From: Cyanophora paradoxa CCMP329
Taxonomy: Eukaryota > Plantae > Glaucophyta
Assembly (NCBI GenBank): GCA_004431415.1
Contig: QPMI01000129.1
Coordinates: 186,001-250,000, forward strand
Length of the DNA: 64,000 nt
Direction of reading: 5' to 3'
Numbering within the stretch: the stretch's first letter is position 1; the number at the start of each line of letters is the position of its first letter. The translations under genes were made by a program, and so were the position numbers. This document shows, in pieces, positions 21,701 through 35,409 of this stretch. The notes below the pieces were generated by a model, which was not told where the DNA came from, did not search any database, and saw nothing but the letters and a program-made list of their open reading frames with translations.

Positions 21701-23373
21701 TCAGAGGCGGGCGCGTTGCTGGAAGGCAGCGGTCATGATGGCGCCCTGGGTCATCCAGCAGCCGCCGTCGACGGGGAGGACGGCGCCGGTGACGTACGAG
21801 GCGCACTCCTCGGCGCAGAGGAAGAGCGCCGCCTGCTCCATCTCGTGGTTCGACGCCATCCGCTGCAGCGGGATCTGCCCATGCGCGCCCGCGCAGGCGT
21901 GCCGGGTGAGGCACACAGATCGAGGGGTGGTGCAGCGTCATACGAGCGCGCACCGACTTGGCGAGCTTGTCCTTGAAGGCGCCGGGGAGGAGCCGCCGGA
22001 AGCCCTCCGTGTCTGCCGGAGGGGGGAAAGGCGTGGGCCGGGGAGCGAGAGAGGGGGCGGGAGAGAGCGAGGGGCGGGCGCACCCTCGACTGGCCCGGGC
22101 CCGAGGGCGTTGACGCGGATGTTCTTGGGGCCCCACTCGACGGCCAGGTGCCTGCGCAGGGGATGAGGTGTACAGGCAGATTTGGAGCCCCGCAGGGGTG
22201 GAGCGGCGGCACCGGGTCATGGCGTCCACGGCGGCCTTGGCGGAGCCGGCGTGGACCTGCAGCGGGCTCGCGTTGTAGTGCAGCGTCATGCTGCGCCCCG
22301 CCCATTTGAGGCCGCCGAGAGCTGCATGCAGGTGCAGACGCGCGGAATCGGGACGGGTACCTGATGTTCAAGATGACGCCGCCGTGCTCGCCCATCCTGG
22401 TCAGGTGTCATCTGAAGAAATCTCGAGCGCAAGCGGAGGCCGGGCCGCACCAGGCGTGGTAGGCGGCCTTGGAGGCGTTGAAGGTCCCGATCGTGTCGAT
22501 CTCGACCACCGTCTTGAACGCGTTGTACGAGAGACGCTCCGCCTGCGCGCGCCGGCGACCCGCCCCGTCGATCGGCCGCCCAGTGGCGCGGCGCGGCGCG
22601 TCGGGGGCGAAGAGGGGGGCGGACCGCCGCCAGGAAGTTGCCGGCCGCCCCTGCACGTCGTGCCTCGTCAGCCGCCGGGCGCGCGGCGCGGCGGAAACAG
22701 AGCGCACCGTTGACGAGGATGTCCAGAGAGCCGAGCTCGTTGACGCAGGCCTTGCACGCCTTCTCGATCTGCGGCCGGCGGCGCTCGAGCGCACGAGGGG
22801 CTGGCGCGCGGGGCGCGGGGCAGGGCGGCACGCCTGCTCGGGGCTGCGGACGTCCGCAGCGAAAGACTTGACCACGCTGCCGGTTGCGAAGCTCATCTCC
22901 TCCGCCGCCTTCTTCAGCTTCTCGCCGCTCCGCGAGACAATCATCACCCGCGCGCCGTGCCGCGCGAACGCCTCGGCGATCCCTCGGCAGATGCCTGCGC
23001 GGCGCACGTTCAGAGCGCTGGAAACGCCGAACGAAGCGCACGGCAGCGGCGGTCACCGGAGCCGCCTCCCGTCACCAGAGCGACCTGGCCGGCAAGGAGG
23101 TCCTGTCGGAAGGCGCTACGCTTCGGGGCCGGCCGCGGCACGACGGCTCGAGGACCCTGCGTAACGTTCTGCGTAGGCGCGCGGCGAGGGCGTCAGCGAG
23201 CGCTTGCAAAACCGGTGCATCGCGCAGTTACGTACGCTGGGCCCCGCAGCGGAGGGGCGGGGGAGCGAGCCCTTGTTGAACAGCGGGTGGATCTTCGCCA
23301 CCAGATCCGCGTACGCGTGCGCCGCCTGCTCCTTGGTCAAGCCGCCTTTTGCCGAGGCCACGGGTTCCGTCAT
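21701..23373 (-). CDS. DECR2: Peroxisomal 2,4-dienoyl-CoA reductase (SDR) with residual ACBP C-terminal helix
   Basis: [25 protein letters not shown]..|[20 protein letters not shown]|[44 protein letters not shown]; C-terminal ARL* is a PTS1. Confidence 0.9.
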
Positions 23374-23930
23374 CTCGTAGAGGGCGGATTCACGTGAACT
23401 GTACATGTGGCGTTCTCGATGGCCAGGACCCCCGCCTAGCTATAGGCTAGTCGAATTCACGTGAACTGCGGCGTTTTATATCTCGAAAAGCAGTACAAAC
23501 GACGGCAGCCGAGTCGAATTCACGTGGCGTTCTCGAAAAGCAGAAAGCGAGGGCTAGGGGGGTACTCGGCCTGGCAGTACGGGTACTTGATCATGACTAG
23601 TACTCGCACGGCATACTCGACATGCATAAGGAGCCGAATCGCACGGAGCGCCGCGAACGAACGAATGTACTGGCGCGAGCCGCGGTCACGGTACTGGCCA
23701 ATGGCCATTTCAAGTTTCCGGCTTTAACTGTGAACCGAGAAGTCGGATCGGAGCGCTTAGAGCCTTCGAAACTTGCCAAGTTGCATGTTGAAATTCACGT
23801 GAGCCGCAAATCAACGTTCACGTGAACGTTAACGTGAACTGAGACGTCGACGCGCTTTTCACGTGAACGCGTACGTATACGTGAACTGAGACGTCGATCG
23901 CGACGCGCTTAGACTATGTATATAGCTAGC

Positions 23931-24014
23931 ACAGCGGTACGCGTTTGTATACCTCTGCGATCGCCAAATATTATTCTTCCAAGTCTATGGGCCCATACAA
24001 ACGCGTACCGCTGT
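23931..24014. repeat. Perfect 20-bp inverted repeat (mini-MITE or hairpin)
   Basis: ACAGCGGTACGCGTTTGTAT (23931-23950) / ATACAAACGCGTACCGCTGT (23995-24014); no TSD found. Confidence 0.8.
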
Positions 24015-24422
24015 CACGGCGCTGTGTAGCTCGTGCATATGATCATGATCACGTGAACGTGAACTGATCATGAGACGTCGACGTCGACGCTGGACGCACT
24101 AGCGCTTAAGCTTAGACGAACCTGCCCGTCTGCCTCATGATCATGATCATGAGCATGTGTCATGATCGATATCAGCGGACTCACGTGCACCCGGACGCGG
24201 CCCTGGCAGCTGCATGCGCAGACGTCGACGTCGACGTCGTCCCGGGTCCACAACCCGTGCCGCCCCGGGCGGGCGGAGGAGCGGGGAGGCCCGTCGACGT
24301 CAATGCATATGCGAGCCTCCAGCAGCGCGCGCTAGCAGCAGCTGCAGCATATGCATGGACTCCGGGACCGCCGCAAGCTAAGGTCAAGCTCGAGCACGGC
24401 CGGCGCCGGGCTGGACGTCGAC

Positions 24423-26873
24423 ACGACGGCGTCAACAAGAGGGCGCAAGCAGACCCACACGGGCCCGACCCTGGCGTACTTTGACCCCGGCCTGCTGGAC
24501 GAGTGGAAGCGCCAGCAGCTGCTCCTCCTCGCCCGAGTGAAAGCAGTCCAAGACGGAGATGAGCGGTTCCTCCGCCGCGCCCTACTCCCGGAGGCGGAGG
24601 CGGCGCTGCAAACAGCGCTCGAGATGGCGTTGGCGGCGGAGCCGAGGGCCGAACCGCTGGATGAAGCACCGCCCGTCTCAAACCCCCGCGAACTGAGAGA
24701 TCTGTATCAGGCGAGCTTCGGGCCTGAGACGTGGAGCGAGCAGGACGGCCAGTACTGGCAGCACGCACTCGCGCTCTGGGAGACGATCGAGAAGTACGAG
24801 CTCGAGAAGCACGGCAACGCGCATCCGAGGTTACTGAACATATGGACGGACGGGAGCCTATTCAAGGGTCAGACGGAAGGCGCGCACGCGGGCTACGGCG
24901 TGGTGGTACCTGCGACCGCTGCGGACGGCGAGCGGCTGAACCCGGACGAGGCTGCGACCGAATGCCTCGGCCGGCTTCGAGGGCTCCAGGAGATCAATAA
25001 AGCTGAACTCCAAGCGGCGATCGTGGCAGACGTACTCGCACCAAACGGGATGCGCCTGCACACGGACAGTCAGAACGTCTGCACGTGGTACCAGAAGTTC
25101 GTGCGGAACGCACACCAGCAGCACGCGCGCGACTATGTCAGACACCCCTGCAATGCAGAGCTGTATGCCTGGTCGCGCTTCCGAGCCCTGCTGCAGCAAC
25201 GAGAACACCGAAGAGCGGTGGCGCTCGTCAAGGTCAAAGCCCATAGCAAGAGGGAACCCCTCCATGAACTAAACGATGCGGCTGACAAGGCGGCCAAACG
25301 GGCGGCCAAGCTCGAGCCGCAGCCGCCAAACACGCTGACAGAGGACATCTTCCTCCCGCCCGCGTTCAGCATGCCGGCGGTGCTGACGATCCAAGGGCCA
25401 GACAGGATAGTGCGGCGGGTCGAAGGAGATCCCCGGCGGCATGCTGCTGTGCTGCACGCGCACCACACGCACTTCGCCTGGGAGAACCAGCTGAACGCGG
25501 GGGAATGGCTGCGAGCGCCGGTGGACCACGGCGCAGTGTACGATCAGATGGCAATGGGACCCCGCCGCGTCGGTGTGAGCCAAGAGAGCAACTGCTTCAG
25601 GGGTACTCACGCGAAGCTCGTGCTGGGTACGGTGGCTACAGCCTCGGTCCGCAAACGCGACGCGCCGGAGCTCTACAGTGAGATAAACCCCGGCGGGTTC
25701 TGCGCCCTCTGCAGCGTACGCCAGACAGATAACGAGGGCCGGCCCCGACTCGTTGCTGGCCCCGTGGAGACGCTCGAACACGTCCTCTCCTGCCCCAGCG
25801 CGCCAGCGGTAACGGCACGCGCGGAAGCAGAAGCCAAAATAGCAGAGGTAGTCGCCAGCGAGCTACCGGAGGCACTCAAGCGGTCGGTACCGCAGGCGCT
25901 TGCTACGTCTCTGAAGGTCACGCGCGTGGCTGACCCGACCCTCACACAGGCAGAGAGACAAACTCAGCTTTGGGTGCTGCGCGGGCTGCCACCAGCCGGC
26001 CTCACTGATCTGATTCGCGAGATCTAGACCGTCGAGGACGAGGTCCAGGCGGGCAAGATCGCCCGCAAGCTAACGAAAGCGATCGGTGAACAGGCGCACA
26101 AAACCTGGGCAGCACGATGCAAAGCGTACGCGGACTGGGAGAAGGAGTGCGGGATCACGAAGATGATGAAAGAGCGACGCGCGAAGCCCCCACGCGCCGA
26201 GCCGCGCCCCCGAGAGACGGCCGCGAAACCTGGCGGGCACCGACGCAAGCGCAGGAAACTCGCAATCGACGAGCCGGTACAGCCGCGCGTGAGTGCCATG
26301 CGCTTATGTCCAGGCACCGGGGTGGGGACGCCCTGGCCCTATCCTCACTGAGCTGCCCCCCAGACGATCACGGCTGGGTCCGGGCGGCGGAGGCAATGCA
26401 GGTGTACGACCACACCAACAGGTATGCATGGGGCGTGGGGACAGCAAGGACCAGACCACGTTAAACGCTGAGAGGGGGTGCTTTCTGGGGGGGGGCTTGG
26501 GGGGCACGGCGGGGACAACAACACGAGGAGGACGCAAACAGTGGAGCGGGAGCCAGTAGCCCACTAAACAGGGGCTGGCCAGCAACTTTTCTCTTTCACA
26601 CCTTTTCTTTCTCTAGCTGCGGCATGCTACGAGGATGGAGTAGGGCATTGCCGATAGAGATTAGGATCTTTGGACATTTAATTAGGCTTCCGTAGGACTT
26701 AGAAATGCAGCAAAGTAGACGTCACAGGAAAAGTAGAAACGCAGTTGTACTTAGAATGTTTAGGCACAGCACGCGAGAGTCCTCATATTCTCTTCCTGGA
26801 TACTGTTTTCAGTGAGGGTATGGTCGACGTTACGACTTCATTGTTGTATGGATGTGCTAATGCAAATCGACTA
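24423..26873 (+). mobile_element. 5'-truncated non-LTR retrotransposon (RNase H + C-terminal zinc finger), defective
   Basis: Intronless ORF: IWTDGS, NKAELQA, LHTDSQ, KVKAHS..NDAADKAAK, CALC..ETLEHVLSCP; in-frame TAG at 26025-26027; 19-bp TSD CGCCGGGCTGGACGTCGAC at 24404-24422 and 26874-26892. Confidence 0.92.
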
Positions 26874-27084
26874 CGCCGGGCTGGACGTCGACCCCGGTCC
26901 AGCGCTAGCGGATGACCGACGACGACCGTCGGACGAGTGGGATTATATTAGACTGAGATATAGATCTAGGGGATAGCTGCAGAGCTCGACACCGCTCAGG
27001 CGAGAGTGGGGTACGCCTGAGGGAGTCGCAGCTGCGGTGGGTGCGGAGCGAGGGGGGGGCGTTCGAGCGAGAGTGGGGTACGCC

Positions 27085-27769
27085 CAGTGTTGTCATCATG
27101 ATGCACACGGCCGTCCAGGCATCATGATGCGTCAATTATGATCCATCATGATCGATCATGACGTCTTCCCGCGGTCAGAATCGTTTCCCAGGGCATTTCC
27201 CACTCCTATTTCGCTGCGCGGGCTCTCTGCTGCGTTTCTAATGCATCGCGACGTGTTTAAGACTCATTTCTGACCAGTCTGGATAGATATTGGGCCCAGG
27301 GTTGGCCTGAAAGAGGTCCACACCCCCCTCTTCCCAAGATTTTTGAGGCAGAGGAGTGGTTGATCAACCTCCTTCAATGTCAAGATGGTGTGTTATGTGT
27401 TTTAAAAGCTGTGTTAAGCGTCTCCGCACCCATTCTCAAAGTGCGAATCGGTGCGATCTTGCATCGCCAGTGGCAAAGGGTGGTGCCCCCTGTACCCCCC
27501 ACGGCAACACAGCAGCCTTTCAGCATCGTCAGAATCGCTCCAAACCTCCTCTGACTAGCATATACGGTGTCGTTAAGTTGTTTAGATCGCATAAGAGGTC
27601 GTTAAAACAGCGCAGGCGACCAGAAATTAAACACGAGATTTGTGCACTGTACAGGTACCCCCCCTCACATCATGATGACGATCATCATAATCCGAGGTCA
27701 TCATGATGCGTTAATGACGTCTCATCATGATGGCGTCATCATGATGTGTGCATCATGATGACAGCACTG
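27085..27769. mobile_element. hAT-type MITE (685 bp)
   Basis: 24-bp TIR CAGTGTTGTCATCATGATGCACAC / GTGTGCATCATGATGACAGCACTG (1 mismatch); 8-bp TSD GGTACGCC at 27077-27084 and 27770-27777; an empty-site-like copy lies at 27000-27029. Confidence 0.92.
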
Positions 27770-28100
27770 GGTACGCCTGAGGGAGTCGCGGCCACGATCG
27801 GTATCGGCCGCGTCGCAACCGCGACGAACCTCGCGAGGGGTACCCGCGGAGGCATTCCACTTGGCACTGTGATCGACGCCTTTTGTCACTTGCATCCCGG
27901 GTGTGCGTTCGGGCGCGGCGCCTTGTTGCGCCGCGTTCATCACGGCTCTCTTCGCACCGCCGCCTCCGCGCGCGGTCCACCGGGATTCTCCCCCTGATTC
28001 CGCCCGGCGCACCGCCGCGCCTCGCGCGCGTTGCGACATTTTTATCTCTTCGGGTCCCCCGCGTCGCCCGTGACACCAGCGCGCGGCGCGCGGCGCGGGG

Positions 28101-29310
28101 ATGGGGCGCGGCCGCGGGCTCTGCCCCGTCTGTCTGCGCGCCCACGCGCCCGTCGACATGATCGGATGCGACAGGTGTGACGCATGGGTGCACTACAGGT
28201 GCGCGCGCCGCGCCCGCTTGTCGTCTGTTCTGTTCCCTCTGTTCCGCCCGTGTGCTCTAATTTTCCGACTGTTCCGGCGCCCCCCCGCGCAGGTGCGCCG
28301 GCGTCCGCGACGACGCGCACGCGGGTTCAATCGATTATTTGTGTCCGGCGTGCGCCGCCGGCGCGCGGCCCGCTCAAGTAGGCCCTCTCCCGCCCCGGTT
28401 GCCCGTGCCTTGCTTACCGCCCGGCCCAGCACGCCGAGGCTGCGCAGCCGCCCGACGCCCCCGTCGCCGGCGCCGAGAGAAAACGTGCTCCGGATCGGGC
28501 GTCGGACGAGGGCAGCGGGAGCGACGGCGGCGGCGCGCGCCGACGCGGTCGGAAGAAGCGGCGTCCGGGCGGCGCCGGTGATACCGGGGTGCGCGCGCGG
28601 TGGAGCGCGCCCCGTACCGTTTCGTTTTCCGTGCTCGCTGGACGTCGACCCTTCTTTCCTCGCAGGCGCCGGCTTCGGGGACGGGACGAGGGGGTGGCGT
28701 CGGTCGCGGCCACGGTCGGGGCAAGCCCGACGCCCCCGTCGTCGGCGCAGAGAGGAAGCGCCCCGCCCCCTCCGTTGGCGGGGGCGTCGAGGCGGGCTCG
28801 GTGCGGGCTCTTGTGTACTCCCGTCTTTTCGGCGCACTGGCACCCCTGACGTTCGTCTGTCGCTGCTACGCCAGGGTCCGGAGAAGAGGGGGCGCGGTGG
28901 CGGGGGTGGGGGCGGCCGTGGTGGCGGCGGTCGGCCGTGTGGCGGCGGTCGGGCGCGTGGGGCGGCGGCGGGCGGCGAGGCGGCGGCGGTCGGGGCGGGC
29001 GGGGCGGCGGGGCGGCGGCGGCGGGGCGGCGGGCATGGGCCCCCTCTCGTCCGTCCCCCGCCGCCCACGGCGTGCGGTGGGTGCTCCGCGGCGCTCGGCG
29101 GCCGCAGCCTTGCCGCTCTTGCTGCGGCGGGCGACATCGTGCGCTGCGCGAATCCGGCGTGCGGGGCCGCCTACCACGCCCCGTGCCGCGACACCTTCGA
29201 TGCCGGGCGCCTCGCGGGCGTCTTCGAGGCGGCGTCCCCGTCGCCGGGGTCCCGGGTCTCTCTACGGCGCCAAGTGGACATTCGAGGGCAGGATGTGCGT
29301 CGTGTTCTCG

Positions 29311-29341
<31 letters not shown>

Positions 29342-32300
29342 TGATCGTTTGCCGTTTGCGCAGTTCGAGACCCCCGCGGACTGCCCGTCCCCGTTCGCTG
29401 CCGGCAAGCGCGCCGACCGGCTGCGCCTCGCCCTGCACGGCGACGGGGCGCCCGCCAACTTCGGGCGGGCCGCCTACCGCCCCGAGCCCTACTTCGCGGG
29501 GCTCTTCGGGGCTGGTGGGGGGGGCTGGTCGCCCCCCGCCGACCTCGAGGCCGCCGGGGTGCGCCGTCGCCGCCGCCCCCCTCTTCCGCTCCGCCCCATC
29601 TCACCCGGCACCCTCCCGCCCCCGACAGAAGCGGGTGCGGGAGTGCCTCGATGCCGAGGCCGCGCTGGCGGCAGGGCGTGCAGAGGAGGAGGCGGTGGCG
29701 GCGGCGATGCGGGCGGCGGCAAGGCGGAAGGAGGGGAGGGAGCAGCTGCTCCGGGACCTGCGCCGTCGGCGGCCGCCGCGCGACCCCCCGGCGCTCGGCA
29801 GGTACAAGGGCGTCCGGCGCTGCATCGAGGTCAGGGACGTGTACTCGTGGGTCGCCGTGCACGAGTTCGCCGGCGTCAGGGTACCGTCGCTTCCCCCCCC
29901 CCCCCCCCCCCATCCCCGGGCCCGGTCGACGACCCCCGGGCTAACCCCCGCCCCCCTCAGGTGCACGTTGGCGTCTACGGTGCGCCGAAAAGCGCGGCCG
30001 AGGCCCACGACCGTGTGGCCATCGCCCTGCGCGGGCCCGACCGCGCGGCCGGCCGCACCAACTCGTCGCCCCCGGACCGCCCCGGGGAGCCCTTCTTCCG
30101 GCGGCTCCTGGGCTCGCGCCCCCCCGCCATCGGCTTCCGCGACCCCGTCCTCGCCGCGGCGGCGGCGGAGGGTCCCGTCGCCACCGTGGACGTGGCGCTC
30201 TGCCGCACGTGCGGCGCGTCGTTCCGGGGGCGCGACGCCCTCGCCAGGCTCGCCGAGCACGAGCTCCGTGCCCGCAGGACGTGGCTCGACGGCAGGGATG
30301 TGGTCGAACGCCAGGCCCACCTGCGCGTGCATCCCGCCGCGGTCCCTGCCGTGCCTCCTTCTGCCGGCGCGGCGCAGGCCGACGGCCCCTCCGAGGACGT
30401 TGTGGTGCGCCATGCCCTCCCCCCCGATGACTCCTCGTCCGTGACCGCTCGTCCCCCAGGGCGCGGTCCTACGGACCGTTGGCGCGCTCCTCGACGCCAA
30501 GGGGGCCGGCGGCGGGCCCCCTGGCTGCTGGTACTGCCCGCGCTGCCGGTTCACCGTCGGTGCGGGGGCCATCGCCGTGCGCATGGGCAGCAGGTTCAAA
30601 CAGTGCGTAGCGCCCTGTCGCGTCTTCTTCCTCGCGCGCACTGCGGCAGCGCGCTCACCTTTGCTGCCGTGTAGGGTGCTAGGCGCGAGTGACCTGCTGC
30701 CCCACCTGCTGGAGGTGGCGGGGCGCACGGGCTACTTCTGGAGGCAGTTCGACGCCGCGAAGCCGGGCATCCTGAAGTTCTACAACGGGCGGGCGGGCGA
30801 AGCGAGCAAGCGGGTGCATGCCCGCCCTCGCCGTCGGTCCCAGTTCCGGCTTGACGCGGTAGCCCCGTCGTCGCAGACCTGCGTCCCCGTGAAGGGCAGG
30901 GCCAAGGACACCAAGGGGACCAAGGAGATCGAACCCGATAAGTGGGGGCGCTTCCCGTGGGGGCGCTCCGCCAGGCGCCTCTTCGGCGATGGGCGGCGGG
31001 ACGGCTTCGTGGCGTCGCTGGCGGGCTGTGGGCCGTCGGACGGCTCCCCGGGCGGCAGCCTCGCCGACCTCCGGCGAGCGAGTGCGACCGTACCCCCTGC
31101 CCCCTGGGGTACGTCGGCGCCCTCCGACGCTCCCCTCAGTTGAGGAGGACGACGCGGTGGAGCTGGCCAAGGAGCGGGAGCGGGCGGCGGAGGCGGCGGC
31201 GGCGGTGGTTGTGCTCGGGGTTCCGGGCAGGATCGCGCTCCGTGCCGCGATCGACCGGCACCCGGACTTCGTCGGCCGGCGGCGGGAGGGGCTCCTTGGT
31301 ACCGTCAAGGGCGGCAAACGCAGGGCCCTCCACCAGCTCGGTGTCGGGCGCCTCCTCGAGGTCGCGGCCGAGCTCGGCGTCGACACGGCCACCTACGCAG
31401 AGCCGTCGGCCGTGCCGGCGCCGGTGCCCGTGGCGGCGGCCCCGGCCCCGCGTCCGGTGACGCTCGTCCACCACGTGCACCACTCCGGCCTCCGTGGCGA
31501 GGGAATTGCCACGGTGCGGCGCGCCGCCATCGGGTGCTGCATCGCCTACAACGCGTGCAAGAACCTCCTGGCCCGCAACCCATGGGTCCGTGCGGGGGTT
31601 TTGTGCGGGCGCGCCGCGGGGCTGCGAACGTTAACTGCCGGCCGCAGATCTTGAAGAGGAAATCTGGCCGCGAGAAGATGCTGTACGCCGCCATCGTCGC
31701 ACGCGACCACCCTCGGCCCGCGCCGCGCGCGGCGCGGGCGCCGCGTGACTCGGCCCGGCGCACGCACGAGCCTCCAACGGAGGCGGCGGTCGGCGAGGGC
31801 GCGGAGGTGGTGGTCAGCGAGGGCGACGACGGGGAGCCGGAGAGCGACGAAGATCGTCCCGCAGCGCGCCCCCTTTCCCCCCTCCCCGCTCTCCCTTCTC
31901 GGTTGACCGTGGGCTCTTTTTTGCCGCTGCGGCAGAGAGAGGGGTGGGGCCACGAGCTCGCCTGCAGAGTGCGCGATGCCATGCTGGCGGAGATGCGGAC
32001 CCACCACGACGCGCATCTCTACCTCCTGGAGACCTCCACACATACGCTGGAGGGCGCGGTGCGCGATGCGCTTCGGGCGGTCGACCAGCAGGTCGAGCGG
32101 GGGGCCCCGCTGAGGAACATCCGGTACCCGTCCTCTCCCCCCCCCCCCAAGGGGCCGCCGAGGCGCCATCTGACCGCCCTCTCCAACCGCACAGGGACCG
32201 CAGCCTCCGGGGCGGGCAGGTCGCGATCGTCGTGGCCTCGCAAGACTACAACGCGGAGGCCGGCTTCTGGTCCTTCCTCCACGGCCTGCCGACGCACGTC

Positions 32301-34823
32301 GGTACGCTCCCGCTCCGGATCGATCACGACGCGCGGCTCGTCCTGGCGCAGCGGGGCCGGGTCCGGTGCGCGCGGGGGGTGTGGGCGCTCGGCTTGGCGG
32401 CCCCGCTGAGTGGGACTGGGCAGGCTGTGCGAGACCGTCGCAGCTGAGAGGGCGCGCGCCGTGACCACCCTGGGGCTGCACACCCCGGCGGACGAGAGGC
32501 CGCTGCGGGTGAGGGAGCTCCGCACCGCGATCACGCAGCACGCAGACTTCGTCGGTGAGCGTCGGAAGAAGCTTATGGGCAAGTACCACCCGTTCATCAA
32601 GCATGTCCCTGTGGAGCGCCTCCGGGAGATCGCGGAGGAGCTGGGGGTGGTGCAGCCGACGTCGGACGGCTCAGACGCCTTCAAGGGCTTCAGGGCCGCC
32701 CCGCCCCCGGCGCCCGCCCCACCGGAGGAGGGCTGGGACCGGTCCTTCCGCAGGGGCTACCACCGTCGCCCGTCGGGTTCGGCGGAGGCGGCGCTCGAGG
32801 CGTACCGTGCCGGCGATGCGAAGCGGCGCGAGGAGGCTGAGCGCGCGCGACTCGATGTCGAGCACGGTCGGCTCGACCCCGAGCGGCACAGGGTCGAGCA
32901 GGAGCGGCTCGATGTCGAACGGGGGCTCTACGGGCTCCTCGCGGACCTCGTCGAGGGCCGCGAGGCGTGGATCGCCCTCGACGGGGGGCTGCGGAAGTTC
33001 CTCACGGGCCTCTGCAGCGACGGGCACCTCTTCGAGGTGCGCGCCATTCTCTTTCTTAAGCCTGCGAGCGCCGATTCAATGGTTGTCTGTTTCAGTTCGG
33101 GAAGGGCCTGGGGCCCGAGCGGGATCACGTGCTGAAGAAGCTGGCGGAGCTCAAGGCCTTGTGCGAGCGGAAGGCTACGTGCGCTATATGCGCCTCGGTT
33201 GTGGTCACCACTCGCGTGCACTGACCGTTCGTGTGCCACGGTGTACAGTGACCCCGCGACGTCCTCGGGTGTCGCTGGTGGTGCTCCGCGTGCGGAGGGT
33301 GCGGAGGGCGCCCCGCGTACACGTACGATGTCCCTTGCCCCTTTTAACATCGGGGGTTAGGATTCTCTCTGATTCCATGCTTCACAGTGAACGCGCGCGC
33401 ACGGCGGAAGCTCCGGAAGAGGGTGCTCCGGGGGCACGAGCACGAGCGAAACGTGGGGACGGACATCCTCCGTCGCATTGCCGAGTACGTATACATGCAT
33501 ATATGTGGCCTCGACGGGTTCTCGTTTTCCTGATCTGTGCGCACCGGTACCCCCCAGCTTCCTCGTCGAGAACTTCACATACGTCATCTACTCGCCCCTG
33601 TGCACGAGCGAGATGGTCCGATCCGATGTGCGTACCCAGTGTGAGAGCGCACCCTGATCCCCCCTGGCCCGTCCTGCCTGCGCAGGTACGCCGCAAGGGG
33701 AGGGTGCTCGGGCCCGCGGCGGCGCGGCAGCTGCTCTACTGTCGCCACCACGAGTCGGCCCCCCCCCCCCCCCCGCCCCCCCCCCCCCCCCCCCCCCCCC
33801 CCCCGCCTTCTCGAGCTCCACGCGACAGATTCCCTCCTCTAGATCTTACGGACCCGCAGGTTCACCGAGATCCTGCAGGAGGCCGCCCTGCGCCGGAAGG
33901 GTTGCACCGTCCTCCTCGTCGACGAGCACTACACCACCAAGACGTGCAGCGAGTGTGGCTGTGTCAACTCGGAGGTTGGCTCGAGCGAGACCTTCCACTG
34001 TGTCAACCCCGGTTGCGGCGCGGTGATGGACCGGGACTTCAACGCCGCCCGGTGCGCGCCCTAGGTCTAGGTCTAGGTCTAGGGGTGTTCGCCGCGGGGC
34101 GCCGTGACGCAAAGCTAGAAATCTCACGTACCTAGAATTCACGTGAATTCGACTCTCAGACTTAGCTCCGACCCGCGCAACCAGAGTTCACGTGAATGCG
34201 TGCTCTCGAACCTAGCCCCGCGAGCGTTCACGTGAAGCTAGAGGGCTCAAAGCTAGAAACCTCGCGCAACCAGAGTTCACGTGAATGCGTGCACTCGAAC
34301 CTAGCCCCGCGAGCGTTCACGTGAAGCTAGAGGGCTCAAAGCTAGAAACCTCGCGCAACTAGAGTTAATGCGTGCTCTCGAACCTAGCCCCGCGAGCGTT
34401 CACGTGAAGCTAGAGGGCTCAAAGCTAGAAACCTCGCGCAACTAGAGTTCACGTGATCATGAATGCGTGCTCTCGAACCTAGCCCCGCGAGCGTTCACGT
34501 GAAGCTAGAGGGCTCAAAGCTAGAAACCTCGCGCAACTAGAGTTCACGTGAATGCGTGCTCTCGAAACTCAGCTCCGTCCCGCAGGAACATCTTCCTGCG
34601 GCTGGTCTCCGGCGTGGACGCGGGGCGCCGGCTGAAGCCCCTCCGATTGGCCGCCCTCGGCCTGGCGTCGCCGACGGCGGCCGAGTACGCCGCCGCCGCC
34701 GTGCGCGCGGCCACCGCCGCTGCTTCGGCCGGCGCTCCGGCTTCACACGACCCGGCCATGGCCGGCTGCAGCGCCCCCGACCCGGCCGCCCCCCGGCCGG
34801 CCGCATCCGTCGTCGATCAGTAG
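28101..34823 (+). CDS. Giant Fanzor2/TnpB-family RNA-guided nuclease fused to PHD x2, AP2-like x2 and zinc fingers (~1,596 aa, 22 exons)
   Basis: Manual GT-AG model, phases all compatible: 28101-28198, 28293-28377, 28430-28588, 28666-28800, 28875-29294, 29364-29558, 29629-29880, 29961-30404, 30460-30602, 30675-30813, 30877-31081, 31140-31585, 31648-32123, 32195-32365, 32424-33036, 33096-33178, 33249-33322, 33388-33484, 33558-33615, 33686-33753, 33860-34051, 34586-34823 (4,791 nt). Motifs: IAYNAC, LLETSTHTLEGAVRDA, IDHDARL, IALDGGLRKFLTG (D 32980), VIYSPL, VDEHYTTKTCSECG (E 33924), C..C, MDRDFNAAR|NIFL (D 34035). Confidence 0.85.
34174..34566. repeat. Intronic ~89-bp tandem repeat, ~4.4 copies
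   Basis: Unit CGCGCAACYAGAGTTCACGTGAATGCGTGCTCTCGAACCTAGCCCCGCGAGCGTTCACGTGAAGCTAGAGGGCTCAAAGCTAGAAACCT in intron 34052-34585. Confidence 0.95.
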
Positions 34824-35010
34824 GGGGACCGCTCACCCCCCGTCAGCGGGCTCTGCTGCGAAAAGCGTTTTACGCGACACCCGCGGCTTAGCGCCTTGTA
34901 GGAACAGCGCCCCTCTCCCTTCGGGGGGGGGGACCCAGTAGCTGCGCGCGACAAGTAGACCCGCGCTGCAGCTGTCCCTGTTTCCGTAGAGCCCTTTGCC
35001 TTCCACCAAT
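34824..35010 (+). ncRNA. Candidate Fanzor omegaRNA scaffold plus flank-derived guide
   Basis: Lies between the Fanzor stop and the return to host sequence; hairpins CCCCTCTCCC-TTCG-GGGGGGGGG (~34910-34932) and AGCTGCGCGCG..CGCGCTGCAGCT (~34940-34973). The position matches the known TnpB/Fanzor layout. No transcript evidence. Confidence 0.5.
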
Positions 35011-35241
35011 TATACCGCCCGATTTTGATGGGATCGTCGCTTGCGCTGGGAATCTTTGCATTCGAGCTCGCCGGGCCCACCTGTGAAGGATCGGGACGCG
35101 CGGCGAGCGGATCGGCGGGGTTCTGACCGTCGCCTGCTTGTAAAGAGCGTACAACTCCAGGCACGCGTCGTCGCTGACTTGCAGGCCCCGATCCAGCGCG
35201 TCCTTCAGCGCAGCAGCGGCAGAGGCCACGGGTTCCGTCAT
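34991..35241 (-). pseudogene. Orphaned 5' part of acyl-CoA-binding protein (ACBP) domain
   Basis: [38 protein letters not shown]|VGP..RYNWWKAKG with intron 35081-35127; homology stops at the insertion boundary. Confidence 0.8.
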
Positions 35242-35409
35242 CTCGTACGTATATACGCGTAGATCTAGAGGGCGCTGAAGTCAGCGACGCACTGTACCCT
35301 CGAGCCACTTCGCCCTCCCCCCCTCCCAAATTTGATCGCAGCAAGCGCACGGAGTTCTGCGGCCTGAAGCTTCAAATTTAGCGTTGCATTTAACGTTGCC
35401 GACCTCGCA

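Follow-up and report, generated by a model that had tools for sequence, protein, structure and literature searches.

In the parts of the literature available, Fanzors are nucleases of 500–700 aa whose insertions or N-terminal extensions, if any, are small. Fanzors and TnpBs have in common the motif D-X(125,275)-[TS]-[TS]-X-X-C4 zinc finger-X(5,50)-RD (PMC3627910), and a DPG motif at RuvC-I is a Fanzor feature (Yoon et al.). Restorative homing has been reported for OMEGA systems (PMC13565253), and CRe elements have variable or long target site duplications (TSDs) and extra sequence past the 5′ copy (PMC3627910). In the window, the whole 64,000-nt stretch of Cyanophora paradoxa DNA that was analysed, one gene predicts a protein in which PHD fingers very probably precede a Fanzor2-type nuclease. 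The literature search found no described PHD-Fanzor fusion and no paper that mentions both Fanzor and Cyanophora. The representative and 5.8-billion sequence sets gave no homologue of this architecture, although three of these searches were blinded by the length window of the latter set. The remark in the initial annotation that no described Fanzor of this architecture was known agrees with the literature search. The balance of evidence leans towards one expressed Fanzor2-type protein with an N-terminal extension, carried by a non-autonomous mobile element in an ACBP-reductase gene, with inferred functional steps.

The initial annotation joined 22 exons through GT-AG introns into a frame of ~1,596 aa. 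The frame is indeed free of stops, but that model gives 1,600 aa, with 21 GT-AG introns, all of 52–106 nt except one of 534 nt, and an alternative with an extra intron (23 exons, 1,576 aa) is favoured by the RNA contigs. RNA pieces in X17 and X18 start exactly at 31936, which sets only the acceptor of this intron, the GC-AG donor being modelled. Every motif quoted from the original model is present in the spliced frame, which was used for the stop check and position counts; the queries for the searches were single exons or natural frames without stops. In DNA of 75% GC, absence of stops is by itself weak evidence for a gene. The GC3 of the model frame is 0.85–0.95 and the highest of the three frames in exons 1 and 6–22 save exon 17, and the model frame is not the highest in the low-complexity exons 2–5. 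Coding differences in exons 2–6 carry a purifying signal: 10 of the 18 are synonymous, where ~30% would be expected (p ~0.02), and the indels are net in frame. All runs covering 29252–29285 have three extra G, also net in frame, so the end of exon 5 in the window is either misassembled or a private allele.

Table 1. Features of the locus, in window positions
Feature	Position	Strand	Evidence or remark
Left junction	23344–23379	+	10-bp near-duplicate of 34991–35000 (1 mismatch), then exact 26-bp copy of 35222–35247
Spliced gene	28101–34823	+	~1,576 aa: PHD, low complexity, PHD-like, AP2-like, unknown globular, helical repeat, Fanzor2-like core
PHD finger 1, exons 1–2 (intron 28199–28292)	28101–28377	+	Pfam PHD E 3e-6; best PDB match TAF3 PHD, E 0.005
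PHD-like finger 2, exon 5	29067–29195	+	PHD_NSD E 5e-4, under cut-off; RING-like models score equally
AP2-like region 1, across intron 5	29250–29470	+	Putative, by-eye resemblance; three-G difference from all covering runs
AP2-like region 2, split by intron 7 (29881–29960)	29797–30068	+	Lead only
Exons 9–11, CxxC motif and globular-looking region	30460–31081	+	GC3 0.89–0.93; exon 11 RNA-joined to exon 12
Helical repeat copy 1, 5′ of Fanzor core	31229–31384	+	46% identity to copy 2 over 48 aa, E 1.5e-6
Putative WED/REC start	31451–32121	+	By eye, a degenerate G..YN motif; weak match of one REC helix
Extra intron, inside exon 13, absent from the initial model	31864–31935	+	Probably GC-AG; pyrimidine-rich, frame-neutral
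Helical repeat copy 2, in core between REC and RuvC-I	32509–32652	+	Pair of copy 1
RuvC-I	32971–33036	+	Catalytic Asp codon 32980; hhalign to Fanzor2 profile E 3e-4
RuvC-II	33559–33627	+	Pro codon 33595 at canonical Glu position; hhalign E 0.0012
Shifted catalytic Glu (33924), TNB zinc finger, RuvC-III Asp (34035)	33861–34049	+	Pfam Cas12f1-like_TNB E 1e-15
Last intron	34052–34585	+	89-nt tandem repeat fills 34174–34566; RNA pieces end at 34052
Candidate omegaRNA scaffold and right end (~34990)	34824–35010	+	By position; putative guide follows in host ACBP exon
Host ACBP-reductase gene, 5′ part severed by right end of element	34991–35247	-	Pfam ACBP E 9e-5

The N-terminal PHD described as canonical passes the Pfam cut-off from exon 1 alone (PF00628, 27.6 bits against 24) and, judged by this score and its C4-H-C3 pattern, is a bona fide PHD finger. 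When aligned with TAF3, the Met and Trp match and a Gly replaces the first Trp, positions that form the aromatic cage in H3K4me3-reading PHD fingers. A second PHD finger, also proposed at the outset, is likely from its PHD_NSD match, although this falls short of the cut-off and RING-like models do as well. Labels given to two AP2-like domains and a C2H2-like finger are not established; the AP2 and C2H2 pieces had no Pfam match exon by exon. Both AP2 candidates are split by introns and were searched as halves, which had no phage tblastn match either. AP2-like region 1 also had no match in the phage AP2 profile comparison. The sole Pfam-labelled Atlas neighbour of region 2 is AP2 (0.86), and the start of exon 8 aligns where expected on the phage AP2 profile, a weak alignment equalled by 8 of 1000 shuffles; as an AP2 domain, region 2 is only a lead. 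A PHROGs search gave no result. Exons 9–11 had no homologue in Pfam or in sequence searches, and neither they nor exon 8 and the PHD start gave a result against the 5.8-billion set, which sees 0.55–1.75 times the query length up to ~1,500 aa, with the full-length model beyond its reach. The 48-aa helical repeat, found both before and within the core, had only a Pfam match to Rho_N (E 0.15), and fold searches gave no match (best Z 3.9).

A complete Fanzor2-like core had been claimed, and the nuclease lobe of it stands. In Fanzors, Pro or Gly replaces the canonical RuvC-II Glu and an alternative Glu precedes the zinc finger by six residues. The RuvC D-E-D residues are intact with the Fanzor rearrangement; the Pro at RuvC-II and the alternative Glu, six residues ahead of the zinc finger, fall where the initial annotation had put them when aligned to the Fanzor2 profile. 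The Fanzor/TnpB motif is present, with a D-to-TT spacing of 173 and TTKTC..C..C..C followed by DRD. Matches were found to the Pfam TNB model and, as top PDB hit, to 9b0l (mimivirus ApmFz2), with no chain labelled Fanzor1 at E<=1. Exon 21 scores 74 bits to the Fanzor2 profile and 44 bits to that of TnpB and, on similarity scores rather than a tree, the nuclease lobe is closest to the Fanzor2 clade. Of the N-terminal HTH/WED-REC recognition lobe of Fanzor2 proteins little was detected: exon 12 had no match in hhalign to the Fanzor2 profile, and an Atlas search with it was without result, leaving a single weakly matching helix in exon 13 (hhalign E 0.035). RuvC-I keeps its Asp but reads DGG, not DPG. 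Exon 15 had 0 matches against 1.84 billion representatives, and its single-sequence fold (pLDDT 60) has RuvC-I mis-folded. Activity may be lost, because the recognition lobe is nearly unrecognisable, DGG replaces DPG, the zinc finger has C-x4-C, and the core carries large insertions.

The gene is expressed and spliced across most exons, at a low level, and its transcription was detected in two RNA studies. RNA contigs show splicing of exons 5–7 and 10–23, at modelled sites for introns 11, 13 and 14 and at the acceptor of intron 5. They join exon 11 to 12 and extend 5′ of exon 11, and link exons 13b-14-15 and both sides of exon 21; in them the Fanzor frame reaches 200 aa or more 5′ of the core. 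Most RNA joints listed were GC-repeat artefacts common to the DNA run and were left out. Exons 1–4 were not seen spliced in the RNA contigs, no contig among those listed crosses exons 7-8-9, and depth is near zero at 29901–30100. This gap at exons 8–9 suits an arrangement of two adjacent genes in the element, a PHD/AP2-like gene (exons 1–8, with read-through to the stop at 30674) and an extended Fanzor starting from ATG 30583, as do the existence of that in-frame ATG and natural stop and the double DNA depth of the PHD1 region, which is thus also present elsewhere. It is the alternative that survives best, though an unlikely one. The two genes would overlap without intergenic space, exon 9 upstream of ATG 30583 has coding GC3 in the fusion frame (0.90 versus 0.75), intron 8 is normal in donor, size and acceptor, and the gap lies in sequence of 76–80% GC at 3–7x depth, where drop-out is expected. 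If the genes were separate, a transcript would end or begin in the interval named in the initial annotation, ~30400 to 31460; the RNA contigs exclude this for ~30830–31585, and it is unlikely in the remainder because coding-type GC3 continues (through exons 6–16) without an AT-rich gap. Codon bias, gene structure and the internal repeat argue that the PHD and RuvC parts are probably linked in one protein.

The gene forms the right end of an ~11.6-kb insertion (about 23,380–34,990) in the ACBP-reductase gene. The 26-bp copy at the left junction includes the start codon of the host gene and is in frame with the remainder of that gene, which continues below 23353 with an ACBP match by eye and a reductase exon (22837–22995) matching adh_short. 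The left end of the element is placed from this one locus. Between 23380 and 34990 there is no TnpA-like or transposase ORF, the other long ORF being LINE RNase H only, and comparison of the left end with the right one revealed no terminal inverted repeat (TIR) or shared inverted match. The LINE and a MITE are nested in the insertion and appear to have inserted later than the element itself. Assignment to IS607 was rejected because there is no TnpA, the serine recombinase next to the nuclease in IS607, and a duplication is present (IS607 has no TSD), assignment to a Fanzor2* cut-and-paste element because TIRs with a 4–5-bp TSD are missing, and assignment to Replitrons because the group is undetected in glaucophytes. 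Non-autonomous Helitron2 elements have asymmetric TIRs and hairpins at both ends, and insert after a T-rich tetranucleotide; at this locus a 3′ hairpin ends ~15 nt ahead of the junction. A 5′-truncated Fanzor remnant in the window is 54% identical and has its last two intron positions in common with the gene, and the genome contains many truncated Fanzor remnants. In DNA run X2 only one copy of the core is present at >=90% identity, with no sign of recent spread, and the gene was found in the 16 DNA runs of a selected list at 0.86–0.89 of words.

Fanzors bind a structured omegaRNA expressed from the right end, and their DNA cleavage depends on a TAM and the guide. The candidate omegaRNA has a folding z of -1.7 (not significant), no meaningful Rfam match and little similarity to the 3′ end of the Fanzor remnant. 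The predicted guide target is absent from the left duplicate, circumstantially in line with a past cut by the nuclease. The gene product is best read as a selfish nuclease of Fanzor2 type, serving homing or maintenance, to which chromatin-binding modules were added, possibly by capture of the N-terminal exons within the element. The transcript 3′ end would be processed into omegaRNA with host sequence to the right of ~34990 as guide, and the complex, by analogy with TnpB, could cut the empty site and so favour the element's restoration or homing. Tethering of the complex to nucleosomal, probably H3K4-methylated DNA would fall to the PHD finger(s) and possibly an AP2-like domain, and may help it to work in this genome, where young transposons are methylated.

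The initial annotation left open a programmable nuclease or a domesticated regulator, and of its elements the Fanzor2-like lobe with D-E-D, the PHD and spliced expression are retained. An element-borne nuclease is likelier than a domesticated regulator because the insertion that ends with this gene on the right interrupts a host gene, and because the gene shares two intron positions with the Fanzor remnant. Domestication, complete or nearly so, would make the fusion an RNA-guided chromatin-binding regulator or host-used nuclease with targets picked jointly by PHD/AP2 and guide. This would accord with the single copy, presence in the 16 runs of the selected list, transcription in both RNA studies, the purifying signal in the N-terminal exons and 22 introns, and TnpB-derived regulators such as TldR are a precedent (PMC13565253). 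It is nevertheless quite improbable, as the catalytic triad is intact while TldR and Cas12m lost cleavage, the insertion disrupts a host gene and has a LINE and MITE nested in it, the sole obvious guide is the flank of the element, and no orthologue was found elsewhere. The least probable reading, a transcribed but non-functional relic of captured exons and a decaying Fanzor with an inactive nuclease, draws on the degenerate recognition lobe, the long inserts of low complexity, the low expression, the single copy and the many truncated Fanzors in the genome, but is at odds with a ~4.7 kb frame over 22 introns without a stop, retained catalytic and zinc residues, synonymous excess and frame-preserving indels.

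How Fanzors handle chromatin and what role they have in hosts could both be tested in a culturable alga with a natural PHD-Fanzor fusion that has an intact active site, a putative target of its own and what may be a scar of cleavage. More speculatively, and with little probability, glaucophyte Fanzor2s may have been repeatedly fused to chromatin readers or modifiers, giving natural RNA-guided chromatin-sensing enzymes that would cut or bind only where a histone mark coincides with a guide match and were possibly recruited by the host. If true, such an enzyme would parallel, in eukaryotes, the engineered Cas-chromatin fusions. The PHD-Fanzor may also suggest compact chromatin-aware editor designs.

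The locus resembles Fanzor2 (mimivirus ApmFz2, PDB 9B0L; giant viruses) in the shifted Glu, RuvC-II Pro, D-E-D and TNB finger, and Fanzor2 proteins of giant viruses are the best sequence matches of exon 21. It differs in size (~1,576 aa against 520–776 aa in the relatives compared, about three times the usual), in carrying PHD within an N-terminal extension of ~870 aa, in reading DGG instead of DPG, in its large insertions and its 22 introns, and in the lack of an IS607 TnpA. Fanzor2* elements of Chloropicon primus and molluscs, as far as the available part of their description goes (bioRxiv 10.1101/2023.08.09.552727), are likewise eukaryotic and non-autonomous, carry Fanzor2 by itself and show a target duplication, but have TIRs and 4–5-bp TSDs, whereas here there are 10 bp and a 26-bp distal piece without TIR, and that part mentions no fused reader domains. 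Like CRe-1/2/3 of Chlamydomonas Helitron2 (PMC3627910), the gene is an intron-rich Fanzor in a non-autonomous algal element with 5′-truncated relatives, and the CRe TSD pattern resembles the duplication at this insertion; CRe elements, however, carry Fanzor1 with Helitron2 terminal hairpins and ATIRs and no chromatin domains described, in contrast to a Fanzor2-like protein with PHD. HNH-AP2 phage homing endonucleases (PMC2248197) are a precedent for an AP2 domain joined to a selfish nuclease, though theirs is a small protein-guided HNH nuclease without PHD, and AP2 is a lead only in the present gene. TldR and Cas12m (PMC13565253) share the TnpB-family scaffold that could here also regulate genes, but are nuclease-dead and prokaryotic, whereas the Cyanophora protein keeps D-E-D and adds eukaryotic reader domains.

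On the plus strand, the gene at 28101-34823, modelled as joining an N-terminal PHD/AP2-like part to a C-terminal Fanzor2-like core, was rebuilt from the sequence as 22 exons linked through 21 GT-AG introns, giving 1,600 codons with the sole stop at the end. All motifs quoted in the initial annotation are present in this frame. Twenty introns are 52-106 nt and the last, which contains an 89-nt tandem repeat, is 534 nt; donors start GTGCG in 13 of the 21. As the DNA is 75% GC and a stop-free thread is easily found, independent tests of the frame matter. GC3 in the model frame is 0.85-0.95, the highest of the frames, in exon 1 and, exon 17 aside, in exons 6-22; it is non-discriminating in exons 2-5. 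Exon 17 (33250-33321) is a low-complexity insert with a GC3 of 0.62, higher in other frames, and the model may have its borders or frame wrong.

The stretch is present in 20 public runs: 16 of DNA and 4, from two studies, that are probably RNA. Three of the RNA runs, along with one of the DNA runs (X2), were examined over 28101-34100. RNA contigs link exon 5 to 29364 (intron 5) and splice 31081 to 31140 (intron 11), 32122 to 32194 (intron 13) and 32364 to 32423 (intron 14). RNA pieces also end at exon borders 29558, 30876, 31585, 33036, 33860 and 34052 while their records run on, which implies splicing there, with the continuing pieces outside the contigs listed. Because pieces from two RNA runs start exactly at 31936, exon 13 most simply includes a further frame-neutral GC-AG intron (31864-31935); the single stop-free frame originally described is retained, with 23 exons rather than 22 and a product of 1,576 aa. 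These joins and ends carry the Fanzor frame, on a single transcript, as far upstream as exons 10-11 or beyond, >200 aa from the core. The RNA check of the proposed junctions bears out introns 11, 13 and 14 at the modelled sites and intron 5 at its acceptor; none of the RNA contigs listed crosses exons 7-8-9, read depth is near zero at 29901-30100, and splicing of exons 1-4 was not seen in the RNA runs compared. One contig from RNA run X19 extends unspliced into the last intron.

At the end of exon 5 (29252-29285), all covering runs carry three more G than the window, a net in-frame difference that alters about 12 residues and probably reflects either a private allele or errors in the long-read assembly. 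Reads over the exons of the first PHD finger, PHD1 (28227-29600), form two haplotypes at about double depth in X2, and a second locus bearing PHD1 probably exists. Reads over 29638-33749 show almost no variation. The Fanzor core in X2 forms a single contig of 4.1 kb at background depth and is therefore single-copy at at least 90% identity.

The full PHD-to-Fanzor fusion is very probably one gene. Two genes, one a PHD gene terminating at the natural stop 30674 and the other a Fanzor gene starting at ATG 30583, are unlikely: they would overlap, GC3 in the part of exon 9 before that ATG is 0.90 in the fusion frame versus 0.75 in the read-through frame, and GC holds at 0.71-0.80 with no AT-rich gap. 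A 48-aa helical repeat with one copy upstream of the core and one within it (E 1.5e-6 at 46% identity) also speaks against two genes, but it binds exon 12 to the core, not to the PHD exons. Since 10 of the 18 coding differences between window and reads in exons 2-6 are synonymous (about 30% expected; p 0.02-0.03), some constraint seems, in this small sample, to act on the N-terminal part.

In Pfam, exon 21 hits Cas12f1-like_TNB (E 1e-15), and its top PDB match is 9b0l, the mimivirus Fanzor2. Giant-virus proteins sharing the VDEHYTTKTC motif are among its best database relatives, and exon 21, scored against profiles assembled from retrieved relatives, reaches 74 bits with the Fanzor2 type versus 44 bits with canonical TnpB. 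Exons 13, 15, 19, 20 and 21 are collinear with the relatives' profile (RuvC-I, E 3e-4; RuvC-II Pro segment, E 0.001), and reversed controls gave no match. The annotated D-E-D triad (Asp 32980, Glu 33924, Asp 34035) and RuvC-II Pro are upheld. RuvC-I reads DGG, not DPG, the Fanzor signature; the second zinc pair is C-x4-C, about 150 extra residues separate REC from RuvC-I, and the WED/REC lobe is scarcely detected by profiles. Given these departures, the 'complete' Fanzor2-like core holds for the nuclease lobe only. DPG excepted, the gene carries the motifs that test for a Fanzor, and it is Fanzor2-like with a function predicted from sequence.

Each exon of the spliced model was searched separately, and homologue searches covered proteins up to about 1,500 aa. 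PHD1 exceeds the Pfam cut-off with exon 1 alone, in agreement with the canonical PHD annotated there. It is nearest to the TAF3 PHD, retaining Met and Trp and having Gly at the first aromatic position, which we take to be the H3K4me3 cage residues. The second PHD-like finger was matched below the cut-off. Both AP2 candidates are intron-split and hence were searched as halves. No. 1 (across intron 5) gained no database support in this form. No. 2 (split by intron 7) looks plant-AP2-like by eye, aligns weakly but in the right register with a phage AP2 profile (equalled in 8 of 1000 shuffles), and has AP2 as its sole Pfam-labelled Atlas neighbour (0.86), a lead. The C2H2-like finger and exons 9-11 found no database support in the exon-by-exon searches.

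The 3' end of the gene adjoins a minus-strand host ACBP gene at its 5' part (34991-35247); left of 23353 come the remaining ACBP, recognised by eye, and a short-chain reductase. At the left junction (23344-23379), a 10-bp near-duplicate of 34991-35000 precedes an exact 26-bp copy of 35222-35247, the host start-codon region, and an open frame is thereby restored. Within the window, the sequence directly right of the element end occurs only once. The arrangement suggests an insertion of ~11.6 kb, accompanied either by a long duplication that has lost the would-be target from its left copy or by a short duplication and a templated patch. Similar junction signatures are described for Chlamydomonas Fanzor elements (PMC3627910). 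The left copy of the host gene has an in-frame start patch; the predicted guide target and the bulk of ACBP are missing from it, possibly a cleavage scar or templated repair. Neither a transposase ORF nor TIR was found in the block, and an IS607 or TIR-type element was rejected on this basis. Folding of the candidate omegaRNA is modest (z -1.7).

Repeats and a Fanzor remnant in the window
Feature	Position	Characteristics
Nested LINE, 5'-truncated non-LTR retrotransposon	24404-26892	RNase H ORF 24351-26027
MITE, hAT-like	27086-27768	~24-bp terminal inverted repeats, 8-bp target duplication
Second Fanzor, a 5'-truncated remnant	1310-2620 (Fanzor at 1310-2370)	exon 21 54% identical to the gene

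The LINE is flanked by 19-bp direct repeats (24404-24422 and 26874-26892), and its ORF falls in a EukProt cluster of Cyanophora paradoxa proteins, confirming this species as the host; the family is multi-copy in the proteome. The MITE, also nested in the block, sits 330 bp before the start codon. The remnant shares its last two intron positions with the gene, and its last intron is likewise filled with a tandem repeat, different from that of the gene. Short palindromic motifs are common to the left part of the element (23380-24300) and the last intron (34130-34570), including a CACGTG-rich 17-bp inverted match (23449-23465 and 34138-34154); these may be binding sites for proteins or a small nested repeat.

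We lean towards a selfish, element-borne nuclease that would be RNA-guided and would cut the empty ACBP site, restoring or spreading the element, with captured PHD, and perhaps AP2, modules that may aid chromatin engagement through histone binding. Cutting of the empty site is reviewed as restoring or spreading TnpB elements (PMC13565253), and young transposons are methylated in C. paradoxa (10.1101/2025.04.15.648976). A domesticated regulator is improbable, and a relic slightly more so. No paper naming Fanzor together with Cyanophora was found. The passages searched in the main Fanzor papers describe HTH domains, N-terminal extensions and one 100-aa insertion, and no PHD or AP2 fusion to Fanzor was found in them. 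Phage HNH-AP2 proteins provide a precedent for AP2 joined to a selfish nuclease (PMC2248197), although AP2 in this gene is only a candidate.
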